The position numbers and the translations under genes were made by a program. Below, piece by piece: positions 34,532-43,661 of a DNA stretch of 64,000 nt. Numbering within the stretch: position 1 is the first letter of the stretch; the number at the start of each line of letters is the position of its first letter. The notes below the pieces were generated by a model. The model was not told the DNA's origin, searched no databases, and saw only the letters and a list, made by a program, of their open reading frames with translations. The stretch spans positions 62,001-126,000 of the IMG/VR virus record IMGVR_UViG_3300032268_000986. One strand, 5' to 3'.

Positions 34532-34560
34532 ATTATACAGCCGACAATCGCAGTTGTCAA
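34532..34560 (-). promoter_or_regulatory. Consensus sigma70 promoter TTGACA-N17-TATAAT inside tRNA array
   Basis: Perfect hexamers and 17-nt spacer; the same at 35497-35525 and 47247-47275. Confidence 0.85.
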
Positions 34561-35488: not shown

Positions 35489-35533
35489 ATAATACAATTA
35501 TATAGTCAACAGGTGTTGCTGTCAACTAAAACT

Positions 35534-35781: not shown

Positions 35782-35855
35782 TGGCATCCCGCCAGGGACT
35801 CGAACCCCGACCAACGGTTTTGGAGACCGACATGCTGCCATTACACCAGCGAGAC
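35782..35855 (-). tRNA. tRNA-Trp(CCA)
   Basis: CGGT-CTCCAAA-ACCG, G73. Confidence 0.92.
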
Positions 35856-35869
35856 ACGTTAAATACTAC

Positions 35870-36484
35870 ATGAAAATCAATTTTACCACTGCATCACCTG
35901 CCATCTATTATCTTGACACTGTGGAACCCCCGCAACCTTGGCCCACCTTGTTACACGAATTGCAACAGTTATTATGGCAACAGGAACCAACCATTGGCGG
36001 TCAAGATCACTTTGCTGTGAGTTGCCTGGGCGCACATACCATACCATACCATTCTGCACCGCATAAATTTCAACAACACTTTGTTGCAGACACGTTCAAA
36101 CAACAAGTGCTAGATCAGCTGTTTGACAATGAAGAATTCATGATGCAGTGGGCCAACCCTGAACGCAAACATGTCAATGACATAACTGTGTTATGTGTGA
36201 ATTGGGTTGCAACCCCGCCAAGATATCGCAATCATCCTTGGCATGTTGACAGTCGCTGTCAAATGGCACATGGCATGATCTATATCACCGAGCAAGACAA
36301 TGTTTTACACAGCACTTGGTTCGATACTGGGCGTAACGGACATTTGTTGCGCATTCCGTCGGCACCGGGGCAAGGTTGGATGGTAGTAAACACTGACCAA
36401 GCCAGACACTGTGCTATGAACGACACTGACCGCACACGTTACAGTCTCAAATTCAGTCTTGAGCTAAAAGTGAGAAAATTTTAA
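35870..36484 (+). CDS. Putative 2OG-Fe(II) oxygenase, antisense to the tRNA array
   Basis: WHVD, GMIY, distal H, R.SL. Confidence 0.65.
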   Translation: MKINFTTASPAIYYLDTVEPPQPWPTLLHELQQLLWQQEPTIGGQDHFAVSCLGAHTIPYHSAPHKFQQHFVADTFKQQVLDQLFDNEEFMMQWANPERKHVNDITVLCVNWVATPPRYRNHPWHVDSRCQMAHGMIYITEQDNVLHSTWFDTGRNGHLLRIPSAPGQGWMVVNTDQARHCAMNDTDRTRYSLKFSLELKVRKF

Positions 36485-36687
36485 CACACTCTTTGGAATG
36501 TGTGTATTAAAACAGACTGTATGCTTAGGGAATAACATTTCTGTCAAGCGACCGGCAACGGGTACGCAATCTGTTTTAATACGCTCGGATTTTTTTATGT
36601 ACAAGAACATAAGCCATCCCCGAGGCCGCCCATTTGAAGCATGTTTAGAGTGCGCTTCGGGATCTCGTTTCCCATGTACACTAAATG

Positions 36688-36720
36688 AAAAACCCTGGAG
36701 TTTTTAGTTCCAGGGTCTTT
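36688..36720 (-). terminator. Intrinsic terminator (putative attenuator)
   Basis: ACCCTGGA/TCCAGGGT stem followed by U tract. Confidence 0.75.
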
Positions 36721-36748
36721 TGAATTTTTCTTGAGTCAGTTAATCTAG

Positions 36749-36883
36749 TTAACCATCCCAACCTTCAAAGGACCCCGACACTCCTGGAATACTATTCAAG
36801 CCCGCAAAACCGCGTGACCAGACAGACGCTGTCTGGAGCATTGTGGATTTTGTCAGCAGTGAATGATTCGTTGTGTTCATCAT
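36749..36883 (-). CDS. 44-aa putative leader peptide MMNTTNHSLLTKSTMLQTASVWSRGFAGLNSIPGVSGSFEGWDG
   Basis: Starts about 7 nt after TTGACA-N17-TACAAT (36891-36919); its 3' end is complementary to the terminator 5' arm. Confidence 0.65.
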   Translation of the reverse strand: MMNTTNHSLLTKSTMLQTASVWSRGFAGLNSIPGVSGSFEGWDG

Positions 36884-36936
36884 AAGTCCTATTGTATAGT
36901 ATTTAGCAATTGTTGTCAACCACTAAAGTGTTTTAT

Positions 36937-37119
36937 TTATCCATTTGTAGTCATTGTGTATGTTTCACTCATGTGAACCATGTACGCACGACTGGTGTTT
37001 GTTTCGTTATGGCTCTTGATAAAATCTCGAGCCAAGGCCTCACTATCAAAATACACAGTGCCACCAACAGTCATGTCGGTTTCTCTTTGTTCGTTGACAA
37101 TAACAACTTTGTATTTCAT
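36937..37119 (-). CDS. Hypothetical protein
   Basis: 60-aa ORF after tRNA. Confidence 0.5.
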   Translation of the reverse strand: MKYKVVIVNEQRETDMTVGGTVYFDSEALARDFIKSHNETNTSRAYMVHMSETYTMTTNG

Positions 37120-37126
37120 AGTTAAT

Positions 37127-37202
37127 TGGTTGCGGGACTTGGATTCGAACCAAGGATGGCAAAGGCTTATGAGACCTCGCTAGTGACCAGACCTTCCCCG
37201 CG
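37127..37202 (-). tRNA. Initiator-like tRNA-fMet(CAT), atypical
   Basis: CGCGGGG...CCCGCAACCA with C1:A72 mismatch; weak D arm. Confidence 0.75.
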
Positions 37203-38297: not shown

Positions 38298-38300
38298 ATG

Positions 38301-38532
38301 CTATATGCAACCACATTAGGGAAGTTCTTGACACGCATCACCAACTTGCATCAAGACCTCATTACGGGCCTAGTAGTTCCGCCGCCTTCCTGGAGTTTGG
38401 TGTAGCCCTATCCCTCACGCTCGATGGTGTCTCGCGCTACTCTTAGGCCCTCCTGCTTCATGGGTATCCGGCTCGAATCAGCCTTTTGTTCACCCCTAAC
38501 GGACTAGGTAACCCTAATGTGTTTGCATATAG
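38301..38532 (-). ncRNA. Candidate stem-closed ncRNA (~230 nt)
   Basis: 20/21-bp terminal inverted repeat. Confidence 0.55.
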
Positions 38533-38572
38533 TAGCTGGGCAAACCCAGCACCATATGAAAATAACTGTAAC

Positions 38573-38584
38573 TTGTTAAAGAAC
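38573..38584 (-). promoter_or_regulatory. rrn-type boxA (Nus antitermination) site
   Basis: GTTCTTTAACAA, one mismatch to GCTCTTTAACAA, just downstream of TTGACC-N17-TATACT (38626-54). Confidence 0.65.
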
Positions 38585-38762
38585 TCTGGAACTAGTTGTG
38601 ATCAACTATTTCCTAACTAGCCACTAGTATAACATCATCTGCCATACCGGTCAACTTGTTTTGTAAAAGCCCCGCCTTGTTGCAGGGTCTTTACAAACTC
38701 AGCTGTCTTTCCCGACTTGTTTCTATTGTAACACTCTACTCAATTTTGGTCTAGCACTAAAA

Positions 38763-42998: not shown

Positions 42999-43070
42999 TG
43001 TTTTTCCTTATAAAAGTAAGGGCTTTTGACCCTGAGCAATTATATATGCAACTGCATGTTGCAGTCAAGA

Positions 43071-43097
43071 AGAAAGGTCAGATTAACTGACCTTTCT
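43071..43097 (-). terminator. Hairpin at the end of the tmRNA coding piece
   Basis: AGAAAGGTCAG/CTGACCTTTCT. Confidence 0.6.
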
Positions 43098-43500
43098 GGT
43101 GGTTTCTGTTACGAGGTATTTCCTACCCTAAGCAGTGTTTAGGCTGCTAATGCGAACTGTGAGTCGTTTGCGTTTACTTTTTTGCTTGATTAACGGTCAT
43201 CGCCTACCGTGCTGTCCACTCTGTTACTTGTTGCCCTGTCGAAACTATGCAGGCCCATCATAAAGAAACTTCTTCAAATCTAGATGCCAAAAGCACAATA
43301 CGCAAACCGGCATCTGTTTGAATTACTACTCCATTACCCATGGTATAGACAATATCATAGTCTTTGCCAATTGTTAGTTCCTTATGCACAGCTTTAACAT
43401 CAGGTAATGATTTAAGTATCATAAACTTCCTTATGGTGGACCTGGGGGGATTCGCACCCCCGTCCAGAACACTGTTCTCATCACTTCATACAGCAATAAC
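43098..43500 (-). ncRNA. ssrA: Circularly permuted (two-piece) tmRNA, tag ANDSQFALAA
   Basis: Acceptor piece ending CAGGTCCACCA (43434) precedes 5' piece GGGCCTG...TTTCGAC (starts 43256); G3:U70; tag frame 43139-43171; outer ends approximate. Confidence 0.92.
43258..43422 (-). CDS. 54-aa ORF inside the tmRNA intervening segment
   Basis: SD AAGGA; MILKSLPDVKAVHKELTIGKDYDIVYTMGNGVVIQTDAGLRIVLLASRFEEVSL. Confidence 0.6.
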   Translation of the reverse strand: MILKSLPDVKAVHKELTIGKDYDIVYTMGNGVVIQTDAGLRIVLLASRFEEVSL

Positions 43501-43502
43501 TT

Positions 43503-43661
43503 TTAGATCTGCACCACGGTCCATTTGGTTGTAAATGGTTTGCCTTCGGCCTTGTGTTTCAGTATCTTCGCAAACTCTTTTTCACGGAGTTTGGCAATGG
43601 TTTCTGTATCGTGGTCGAAGCAAGCCTTGTACAAACGAGAAACCAATTTCTTTTGTTTCAT
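43503..43661 (-). CDS. 52-aa basic hypothetical protein
   Basis: SD aaggagg; [14 protein letters not shown]... Confidence 0.6.

Follow-up and report, generated by a model that had tools for sequence, protein, structure and literature searches.

Leader-peptide transcription attenuators control amino-acid biosynthesis operons of enterobacteria, such as trp, his, phe, leu, thr and ilv, and several are represented in Rfam (Trp_leader, His_leader, Thr_leader and others). In these systems, a short promoter-proximal ORF precedes an intrinsic terminator located ahead of the regulated genes, and a mutually exclusive antiterminator uses the 5' arm of the terminator. The leader stop codon is placed so that a terminating ribosome favours the terminator, whereas a stalled ribosome favours read-through. 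T-box riboswitches also sense tRNA charging and act through an antiterminator/terminator choice, but they bind the uncharged tRNA directly through a specifier codon and the T-box bulge. They need no translation, are specific for one tRNA and control synthetase or amino-acid genes. RNA elements at the head of long untranslated transcription units are also known from processive antitermination of the rrn/lambda type (boxB-boxA-boxC; put RNA of HK022), in which polymerase runs through terminators. In phage T4, tRNA genes are transcribed as a cluster together with extra structured RNAs of unknown function (species 1 and 2). Current ideas on the large tRNA sets of phages include codon-usage compensation, replacement of degraded host tRNAs and escape from tRNA-cleaving defences, whereas little is known about how these genes are regulated.

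Here we analyzed a 64,000-nt stretch of the IMG/VR virus record IMGVR_UViG_3300032268_000986 (hereafter the window), in which a small ORF and a switchable transcription stop signal are found in front of phage tRNA genes. The amino acids of the encoded peptide match the tRNAs that follow. In full-text literature searches, no description of a leader peptide or attenuator for phage tRNA arrays was found.

Anatomy of the unit

To verify the first-pass annotation, which had described a 44-aa leader sampling the 16 amino acids of a downstream tRNA block and trp/his-type attenuation logic acting as a general sensor of tRNA supply, we re-examined positions 36919-36688 of the minus strand. Every factual statement of the annotation was confirmed. 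A sigma-70-type promoter (36919-36891) consists of TTGACA (36919-36914), N17 and TACAAT (36896-36891), with 11 of 12 matches. ATGATG starts 7 nt after the -10 box, which places +1 at or next to the A of the ATG, so the mRNA looks leaderless. The ORF at 36883-36749 encodes MMNTTNHSLLTKSTMLQTASVWSRGFAGLNSIPGVSGSFEGWDG, 44 aa followed by a stop codon. Residues 1-33 hold exactly M, N, T, H, S, L, K, Q, A, V, W, R, G, F, I and P, whereas E is at position 40, D is at position 43, and Y and C are absent. Codons 1 to about 31 form the putative sensing part.

The minus-strand tRNAs from 35855 to 29040 cover exactly those 16 amino acids. This array comprises 27 tRNAs, counting a tRNA-Ser(UGA) at 34089-34005 that was read by eye. 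Glu, Tyr, Asp and Cys lie in the upstream block at 38297-37228, followed by a tRNA-Met at 37202-37127. To estimate the probability of a chance match, we sampled 400,000 random 33-residue stretches of the proteins of this phage. Of these, 0.28% lacked D/E/Y/C and 1.1% contained all 16 other amino acids, and none did both, indicating that the match is far beyond chance.

The annotation had not noticed that the tRNA block is not directly downstream. A conserved structured spacer of about 200 nt (36687-36485, minus strand) and a convergent plus-strand gene of 615 nt encoding 204 aa (35870-36484) lie between the unit and tRNA-Trp. The array also carries internal 12/12 consensus promoters at 35525 and 34560, and hence only part of the array may depend on read-through.

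The antiterminator 5' strand GUCGGGGUCCUUUGAAG (36779-36763, codons 35-41) contains GGGUCCUUUGAA (36775-36764), which pairs 11 of 12 with UUCAAAAGACCC, overlapping the 5' arm of the terminator. The 3' strand AUUCAAAAGACCCUGGA (36725-36709) consists of a variable flank plus the terminator 5' arm. In the predicted fold, a small hairpin in the antiterminator loop (36753-36738, GUUAAC-UAGA-UUAAC region) contains the stop codon UAA (36751-36749). The predicted intrinsic terminator (36716-36688) is formed by ACCCUGGA, a 9-nt loop, UCCAGGGU and a U-run. It has an 8-bp G+C-rich stem and a U5-6 run, and it is unique in the window. An 8-bp mid-ORF hairpin (36836-36818), CCAGACAG-CGU-CUGUCUGG, was part of the minimum-free-energy (MFE) fold, and its 3' arm contains the conserved Trp codon. 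The CCAGG/CCUGG pairing was kept in 89% of cells in 23 relatives, and the alternative pairing of CCUGG with the I-P-G codons in 91%. The hairpin is conserved and, as the annotation had proposed, a candidate pause hairpin.

Related units in phage contigs

Megablast and blastn searches of the region against 50,697 phage records found no relative among cultured phages, and no sequence similarity to the T4 tRNA cluster was detected. In contrast, fifty related units were found in uncultured phage contigs. The first set consisted of 45 distinct units from viral contigs, all with the same order of parts, and five further units came from a later scan. Loci carrying these units are designated by L numbers. 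The promoter, with the ATG 6-10 nt after the -10 box, occurred in 41 of 45 units. In the remaining four (L007, L008, L011 and L025), the leaderless start was replaced by a 47-49 nt UTR carrying a Shine-Dalgarno sequence.

To examine whether the ORF is under coding constraint, we analyzed the alignment of the first set. All 45 units keep an ORF of 32-49 codons, and 67 of 68 gap runs in its conserved part are multiples of three, while gaps after the antiterminator have arbitrary lengths. The pN/pS ratio was about 0.42. These results suggest that the ORF is translated. A non-coding small RNA or riboswitch-like element acting without translation, for example by binding a tRNA or a metabolite directly, would be consistent with the strongly conserved RNA pairings and with the structured spacer. 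However, this reading is very unlikely, because the ORF is preserved in every unit found (50 in all), its indels keep the reading frame, four units have Shine-Dalgarno variants and the stop codon has a fixed place.

We further compared the region with known RNA and protein families. Rfam searches gave nothing at the gathering level. At permissive thresholds, only sub-threshold hits driven by the terminator were obtained, to the Thr, His and Trp leaders and to assorted sRNAs. The best scores for Trp_leader (RF00513), His_leader (RF00514) and Thr_leader (RF00506) were 15.5-20.9 bits against gathering thresholds of 41-55, and membership in these families was rejected. No T-box hit was found over 36500-37130 even at E up to 10. 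A box C/D-like reading of AUGAUGA...CUGA was supported only by a DdR1 snoRNA model at 14.6 bits against a gathering score of 70. Pfam and PHROGs returned nothing for the leader peptide, the 60-aa ORF at 36937-37119 or the 204-aa gene. An Asn-synthase-like gene 15 kb away raised the possibility of a lasso-peptide or RiPP precursor, but no fitting core motif was seen by eye. The hairpin occurs in contigs binned as Haliscomenobacter and Flavobacteriales MAGs, which was judged unreliable for host inference.

Antiterminator and terminator

Consensus folding of the leader alignment with RNAalifold recovered only the terminator and one helix, because MAFFT puts the antiterminator out of register. Per-sequence duplex analysis was therefore used. 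The antiterminator duplex had a mean z of -3.25 against dinucleotide shuffles, with 42 of 45 units below -1.64. Cognate strands paired better than non-cognate strands (-19.5 vs -16.2 kcal/mol, permutation p<1e-4), and each of 33 distinct flanks was matched by its own 5' strand. The GGGUC core was conserved although its reading frame differs between loci. These results indicate that the antiterminator is conserved and covaries with the variable flank of the terminator.

The stop codon lies in or just after the antiterminator 5' strand. It ends 12-41 nt after the start of this strand and 22-33 nt before the terminator hairpin in all 45 units. When a ribosome footprint was placed on the stop codon, the terminator was the MFE fold in 41 of 45 units, whereas free RNA had the terminator as its MFE fold in only 19 of 45. 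In the window, free RNA folded into the antiterminator. With a ribosome stalled at codons 3 to about 30, the results were mixed, and the terminator was still the MFE fold at 40% of positions on average. The switch therefore rests on kinetics that were not modelled. In classical attenuators, an upstream segment (1:2 hairpin) pauses the polymerase and blocks the antiterminator when the leader is not translated. Here, the mid-ORF hairpin does not pair with the antiterminator 5' strand and no other segment doing so was found, so untranslated RNA is predicted to read through.

The hairpin is perfectly conserved, loop included. However, the same stem ends a structural gene in related contigs, suggesting that it is a working, generic terminator of this phage group, and its own conservation says little. 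One alternative is that the ORF is an independent small gene encoding a functional micro-protein, ended by an ordinary, somewhat leaky terminator, with the array transcribed by constitutive read-through or from phage-specific promoters in the spacer that a sigma-70 scan cannot see. The pN/pS value and the peptide motif AWS[RH]..[FY]..NSIPG, which is conserved more than a pure sampling leader would need, are in line with this view. It does not explain the covarying helix between the 3' end of the ORF and the terminator arm, conservation of the GGGUC core across reading frames, the fixed distance from stop codon to hairpin, the strict position ahead of tRNA arrays or the co-variation of leader composition with the array, and the peptide has no family match in Pfam or PHROGs. 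We consider this alternative unlikely.

Another alternative is that, in this window, the hairpin serves mainly as a bidirectional terminator of the convergent 204-aa gene and the unit is a decoupled relic. The A-tract upstream of the terminator makes it bidirectional, and the hairpin scored as a terminator on both strands, with 11 pairs on the plus strand followed by CTTTTGAATTTTT. The 204-aa gene converges on it, and a 38%-identical homologue sits at the same place in L002. Most relatives, however, have no convergent gene yet keep the same hairpin and switch, and all parts of the unit and of the spacer are intact in the window. No alternative promoter for tRNA-Trp/Ala/Gln/Ile was found in scans covering sigma-70-type sites. 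This possibility is therefore remote.

Relation of the leader to the tRNA array

In the first set, every locus with at least about 480 nt of downstream sequence had a same-strand tRNA array (39 of 39), starting 177-1627 nt after the hairpin, and no locus had an opposite-strand tRNA. Of the 29 spacers short enough to be scanned in full, 26 had no promoter-like site of the sigma-70 type.

To examine whether the amino-acid set of the leader tracks the array, we compared the two in 25 loci with at least 3 kb of downstream sequence. Fisher tests of leader against array gave p=1e-4 for Tyr, p=0.012 for Cys, p=0.003 for Glu and p=0.04 for Asp. Of the array amino-acid types, 91.5% occurred in the sensing region, whereas shuffled pairings gave 86% (p<1e-4) and random phage-protein windows gave 73%. 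Leaders held 18.2 distinct amino acids per 40 residues, against 16.5±0.2 for random windows, and 9 of 45 leaders held all 20 amino acids, against 1.1% of random 42-mers. There were no tandem runs of one regulatory codon such as those of biosynthetic leaders. Cys and Tyr appeared in or vanished from leader and array together in several lineages. On a tree of the spacer RNA, Cys was absent from both leader and array in three separate places, namely L002, the window and the L047 clade. L075, whose leader is most like that of the window, has GYDH where the window has GFAG, and its array carries the Tyr and Asp tRNAs. In loci fetched afterwards, the leader covered 15 of 15 array types in L140, 3 of 3 in L146, 11 of 11 in L150, 10 of 10 in L136 and 9 of 10 in L143.

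There were exceptions to the match. L047, L027 and L050 have Tyr at position 6 or 7, but their tRNA-Tyr is in the upstream block, and L075 lacks Cys in the leader although its array has tRNA-Cys. The arrays behind the shorter leaders resembling that of the sister unit (see below) cover only part of the leader. In addition, synonymous codon choice showed no match to the array anticodons beyond the amino-acid level. Given the amino acid, 390 of 681 leader codons were decodable by the array tRNAs, against 389.5 expected from the codon usage of the phage (z=0.07).

Taken together, the comparative evidence supports the interpretation of the first-pass annotation. In the absence of expression or termination data, and with all relatives uncultured, we consider that the unit is probably a ribosome-mediated transcription attenuator at the head of a phage tRNA operon. 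In this model, the RNA begins at or next to the AUG, and a 70S ribosome loads on the nascent leaderless RNA and translates the leader. The end of the ORF (GGGGUCCUUUGAAG) can pair with the flank and the first bases of the terminator 5' arm, and this antiterminator is transcribed before the terminator 3' arm. A ribosome running unhindered to the stop codon would cover or unfold the antiterminator, so that the ACCCUGGA/UCCAGGGU hairpin forms and transcription stops at about 36688. A ribosome stalled anywhere in roughly codons 1-31 would allow the antiterminator to form, and RNA polymerase would read on into the structured spacer and the array. Because the sensing part contains at least one codon for nearly every amino acid whose tRNA is in the array, and few or none for the others, a shortage of any matching charged tRNA may turn array transcription up and ample supply may turn it down. 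The unit would thus work as a homeostat for tRNA supply. Compared with the enterobacterial attenuators, the presumed regulated genes are tRNAs instead of biosynthetic enzymes, the leader samples up to all 20 amino acids once or a few times, the mRNA looks leaderless, and the owner is a phage.

A translation-coupled attenuator could instead report general translation capacity, such as ribosome availability, initiation on leaderless RNA or overall elongation rate, with the diverse leader composition being incidental or serving another purpose. The architecture evidence does not depend on what is sensed, no synonymous-codon match was found, and the leaderless start could make initiation itself the regulated step. 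This reading is nevertheless unlikely, because the amino-acid set of the leader changes together with the tRNA set of the array in several lineages and between two units of one genome, and leaders are richer in amino-acid types than phage proteins.

It is also possible, although tentative, that phages carry a programmable sensor in which the amino-acid set of a leaderless pangram peptide is edited in step with gains and losses of tRNA genes in the operon it gates. Depletion of any one of up to 20 charged tRNA species, through host shut-off, a codon-usage mismatch or host anticodon nucleases, would then switch on transcription of the phage's own replacement tRNAs. This would be the first attenuator known to control tRNA genes and the first leader built as an OR gate over many amino acids, with the structured spacer RNA being part of the same leader. 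A leader-peptide attenuator matched to the tRNA set would show that phages regulate tRNA production by feedback from translation itself, and would extend classical attenuation to non-coding target genes.

Spacer RNA and sister unit

The spacer (36687-36485) is a conserved structured RNA with five predicted helices. Of 37 consensus pairs, 27 showed compensatory changes, and no Rfam match was found. In relatives, the spacer runs directly into the first tRNA. Its position after the terminator resembles that of rrn/lambda-type antitermination leaders, but no match to boxA (GYUCUUUAACAA) was found within 36485-36919, where the spacer reads CACUCUAAAC, and there is no evidence of Nus factor or polymerase binding. 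Such a function would add to the attenuator and not replace it. The only exact boxA in the window (GTTCTTTAACAA) lies at 38573-38584, ahead of the upstream tRNA block. The permuted tmRNA at 43048-43526 is complete, and a tmRNA-piece reading of the unit was dropped.

A sister unit ("Attenuator 1") was located at 38951-38764 on the minus strand. It consists of a promoter, a leaderless 32-codon ORF MMTQLITLNYWTAIAYESDCEPSSTVQVLQRV (38916-38818) and a terminator (38790-38764), and stands ahead of the tRNA block Glu, Tyr, Asp, Cys, Met. In 8 genomes, a second unit with an A-Y-E-x-D(-C) leader heads the Glu/Tyr/Asp(/Cys) block, and it covers the whole block in 7 of 8.

Structure of the unit and its tRNA context

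The window is part of IMGVR_UViG_3300032268_000986, a 342,865-bp uncultured viral contig. It carries 33 tRNA genes called by ARAGORN and a permuted tmRNA, all on the minus strand. The unit lies on that strand between an upstream tRNA block (Glu, Tyr, Asp, Cys, and Met, 38297-37127) and a long downstream block that starts with tRNA-Trp at 35855. A further tRNA with a long variable arm and anticodon UGA (Ser) was read by eye at 34089-34005 (minus strand); it was missed by ARAGORN, and Rfam called it tRNA-Sec at 48 bits against a threshold of 47. The tRNA-Met directly upstream of the unit (37127-37202, minus strand) has an unusual anticodon position in the ARAGORN call and, by eye, a C1:A72 mismatch, and may therefore be an initiator tRNA. 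A tRNA-Met sits directly upstream of the unit in many relatives, and in the related loci L002, L005, L008, and L011 (L numbers denote loci recovered by our searches) it shares the unusual anticodon position. A 60-aa ORF lies between this tRNA-Met and the promoter of the unit (36937-37119, minus strand); it has no family match and is absent in L002, where the tRNA abuts the promoter.

We examined the features proposed in the first-pass annotation. The promoter TTGACA-N17-TACAAT occupies 36919-36891, with 11 of 12 matches to the consensus, and ATGATG begins 7 nt after the -10 box, so the transcript should start at or beside the AUG. The ORF at 36883-36749 has 44 codons. Its first 33 residues use exactly the 16 amino acids served by the downstream block and none of Asp, Glu, Tyr, or Cys, whose tRNAs are in the upstream block; Glu40 and Asp43 are the only such residues, and both lie in the tail. 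GGGUCCUUUGAA pairs 11 of 12 with UUCAAAAGACCC, and the 8-bp mid-ORF hairpin is real. To estimate how often such a composition arises by chance, random 33-residue stretches were drawn from the proteins of this phage. These lacked D/E/Y/C in 0.28% of draws and contained all 16 other amino acids in 1.1%, whereas none of 400,000 draws did both.

Related units in viral contigs

No cultured phage matched. An exact search for the 27-nt hairpin in viral contigs returned 20 loci, a search with a free loop returned 120 or more, and a third scan added more. After duplicates were removed, 45 distinct units of the same build were analyzed, and five further units served as a replication set. Every unit has a consensus-like promoter, an ORF of 32-49 codons (21-22 in one extra family), and a stop codon ending 22-33 nt before the hairpin. 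The start codon lies 6-10 nt after the -10 box, but in four units it follows a 47-49 nt UTR with AAGGA or AGGA placed 7-9 nt upstream. An ATAAATA motif recurs about 30-60 nt upstream of the -35 box in L014, L005, L010, and other loci, and also between -35 and -10, often as the loop of a hairpin (for example GTTGTATAAATACAAC). It resembles the T4 late-promoter motif TATAAATA.

Many other hits carried the same stem, ACCCTGGA/TCCAGGGT, with different loops (L026, L033, L038, and many others). In these, the stem ends a structural gene (...NFAPV*) and is followed by GCCGTAAATA; it looks like a shared terminator part across this phage group. The stem itself is therefore a generic terminator of the group, which supports its function as a terminator but means that the conservation of the hairpin is not special. 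The exact hairpin also occurs on genome contigs (L128-L130) binned as Haliscomenobacter sp. and as an uncultured Flavobacteriales MAG, which are probably mis-binned phage contigs.

Coding signature of the leader ORF

To examine whether the ORF is coding, we aligned 23 window-like units. In the conserved part of the ORF, 67 of 68 gap runs have lengths of 3 or 6, whereas gap lengths after the antiterminator are arbitrary. Single-difference codon pairs gave a pN/pS of 0.42. The existence of both leaderless and Shine-Dalgarno-led versions argues for translation. The tail of the ORF behaves differently: the GGGUC core is conserved as nucleotides while its reading frame differs, encoding Gly-Ser in the window and Arg-Val-Arg in L002. 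That stretch is therefore constrained as RNA.

Antiterminator and terminator pairing

For each unit, we computed the best duplex between the 3' part of the ORF and the 12-nt flank plus 5' arm of the terminator. This duplex was more stable than in dinucleotide shuffles in 42 of 45 units, with a mean z of -3.25. The flank differs among units, with 33 versions, and the 5' strand follows it, as in GGGTCCGAGTAGA with TCTACTAGGACCC and GGGTCTTAGATAAGAT with ATTTTATCTAAGACCC. Cognate pairs were more stable than non-cognate pairs (-19.5 vs -16.2 kcal/mol, permutation p<1e-4).

In the window, the free RNA and the nascent RNA before the 3' arm of the terminator both fold into the antiterminator, while a ribosome footprint on the stop codon gives the terminator. 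Across the family, the terminator is the MFE fold in 41 of 45 units with a ribosome on the stop codon and in 19 of 45 for free RNA. The result was mixed for ribosomes stalled at codons 3 to about 30, where the terminator remains the MFE fold at 40% of positions on average, so the decision must be kinetic. Segments CCAGG and CCUGG (the latter holding the invariant Trp codon) and the I-P-G codons UUCCAGG can form two further exclusive helices, which are kept in about 90% of cells but show little covariation. We found no segment that blocks the antiterminator when translation is absent, and in this the unit departs from the trp design.

Downstream tRNA arrays and spacer RNA

In the first set of 45 units, all 39 loci with at least about 480 nt of downstream sequence have a same-strand tRNA array beginning 177-1627 nt after the hairpin, and no tRNA lies on the other strand. 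Of the 29 spacers short enough to be scanned in full, 26 have no sigma-70-type promoter. In those loci the first tRNAs of the array can only be reached through the terminator, unless the phage uses promoters of another type, which a scan limited to sigma-70-type sites does not see. Arrays also contain internal consensus promoters; in the window, perfect 12/12 sigma-70 consensus promoters sit in short gaps inside the array at 35497-35525 and 34532-34560 (minus strand), and similar internal promoters occur in most related arrays. The share of the array that depends on read-through is therefore uncertain.

The spacer between the terminator and the first tRNA is a conserved structured RNA of about 200 nt. 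In an alignment of 17 sequences, 37 consensus pairs forming five helices were predicted, and 27 of them show compensatory double changes. It has a hairpin with loop AACGAG, then CACUCUAAAC, a GGGCGG-led helix pair, a 15-bp long-range stem, and a final hairpin, and it has no Rfam match. In the window this spacer is complete (36687-36485, minus strand). A convergent 204-aa gene (35870-36484, plus strand) then sits where the first tRNA should begin. This gene has no family match; by eye it has an HxD...H-like motif, and a 38%-identical homologue sits at the same place in L002, next to a 270-aa ORF. Just after the terminator in L006, L019, L012, L017, L037, L046, L058, and others, small ORFs of 15-70 aa with a Shine-Dalgarno sequence (for example MTTEEYWQWIHNNVQ and MTDYTKLNDRI...) lie between the terminator and the spacer RNA, and would be expressed only on read-through.

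Leader composition and array content

To understand whether the leader reflects the array, we compared their amino-acid sets. In the window-like units with complete arrays, residues without a downstream tRNA occur almost only in the tail: E40 and D43 in the window, D33 in L006, E40 in L007, E38 and Y42 in L011, and E39 and Y43 in L052. The sensing part was defined as the codons that leave the antiterminator free when in the A site. For 25 loci with at least 3 kb downstream, presence in the sensing part and presence in the array were associated for Tyr (12/3/0/10, p=1e-4), Cys (15/1/4/5, p=0.012), Glu (p=0.003), and Asp (p=0.04), although these tests are not fully corrected for shared ancestry. 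Of the array amino-acid types, 91.5% occur in the sensing part, compared to 86% for shuffled leader-array pairings (p<1e-4) and 73% for random windows of phage proteins. Leaders are unusually diverse, with 18.2 distinct amino acids per 40 residues against 16.5±0.2 for random windows. Nine of 45 hold all 20 amino acids, against 1.1% of random 42-mers, and one 42-residue leader (L043/L096) is a perfect pangram whose array covers all 20 amino acids.

On a tree of the spacer RNA, Cys is missing from both leader and array in three separate places, namely L002, the window, and the L047 clade. Cys also occupies different leader positions (6, 14-15, 26) in different lineages. L075, the leader most like that of the window, reads WSRGYDH where the window reads WSRGFAG, and its array holds the Tyr and Asp tRNAs. 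Exceptions exist: L047, L027, and L050 have Tyr at position 6 or 7 with their tRNA-Tyr upstream, and L075 lacks Cys in the leader although its array has tRNA-Cys. Given the amino acid, the synonymous codons of the leader are no more often decodable by the tRNAs of the array than expected from the codon usage of the phage (390 observed vs 389.5 expected of 681). With large arrays this test has little power, but it adds no support.

Units fetched after the tests were set up behaved alike. The leader contains 15 of 15 array amino-acid types in L140, 3 of 3 (Glu, Tyr, and Asp) in L146, and 11 of 11 in L150, where Cys is in both leader and array. In the short-leader family, the leader contains 10 of 10 types in L136 (22 codons) and 9 of 10 in L143 (21 codons), and neither the leader nor the array has Lys, His, Gln, Phe, Trp, Tyr, or Cys.

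A second unit in the same genome

The window has exactly two units of this build, and the second gives a control within the same genome. It lies at 38951-38764 (minus strand) and has a leaderless 32-codon ORF, MMTQLITLNYWTAIAYESDCEPSSTVQVLQRV, and a different terminator, ACCCGCA...UGCGGGU. It stands ahead of the Glu, Tyr, Asp, Cys, Met block. Seven other genomes have the same pair of units, and their upstream leaders carry an A-Y-E-x-D(-C) or similar cluster. They contain every amino-acid type of their block in 7 of 8 cases. In the window, this unit is followed (38300-38700, minus strand) by a second terminator-like hairpin (about 38690-38663), a further promoter (38654-38626), a hairpin, an exact rrn-type boxA GTTCTTTAACAA (38584-38573), and about 260 nt of G+C-rich sequence that looks like structured RNA, has no Rfam match, and ends at tRNA-Glu. 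Its link to the block is therefore less direct.

Comparison with known attenuators

The unit would work like the leader-peptide attenuators of the trp, his, phe, leu, and thr operons, with which it shares a short ORF, a terminator, a covarying antiterminator, and the placement of the stop codon. It differs from them in that its target is tRNA genes, its leader appears designed for diversity in place of a codon run, its start looks leaderless, and no anti-antiterminator was found. It does not belong to any Rfam leader family. In logic it may also resemble the ribosome-stalling attenuators of resistance genes, and it is not a T-box. Full-text searches found no description of such a unit for phage tRNA arrays, which is absence of evidence within the literature searched. 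The feature is real, conserved, and very likely regulatory. In the absence of transcript, footprint, or termination data, we consider it likely that it is a ribosome-mediated attenuator gating read-through into the tRNA operon. The full model, in which the supply of the charged tRNAs matching the array is what is sensed, is held with only moderate confidence.

The permuted tmRNA of the window (43048-43526, minus strand) is of the two-piece type and carries the tag ANDSQFALAA. Related contigs (among L021, L140, and L150) carry tmRNAs with the tags ANDDVYAMAA and ANDELFALAA.
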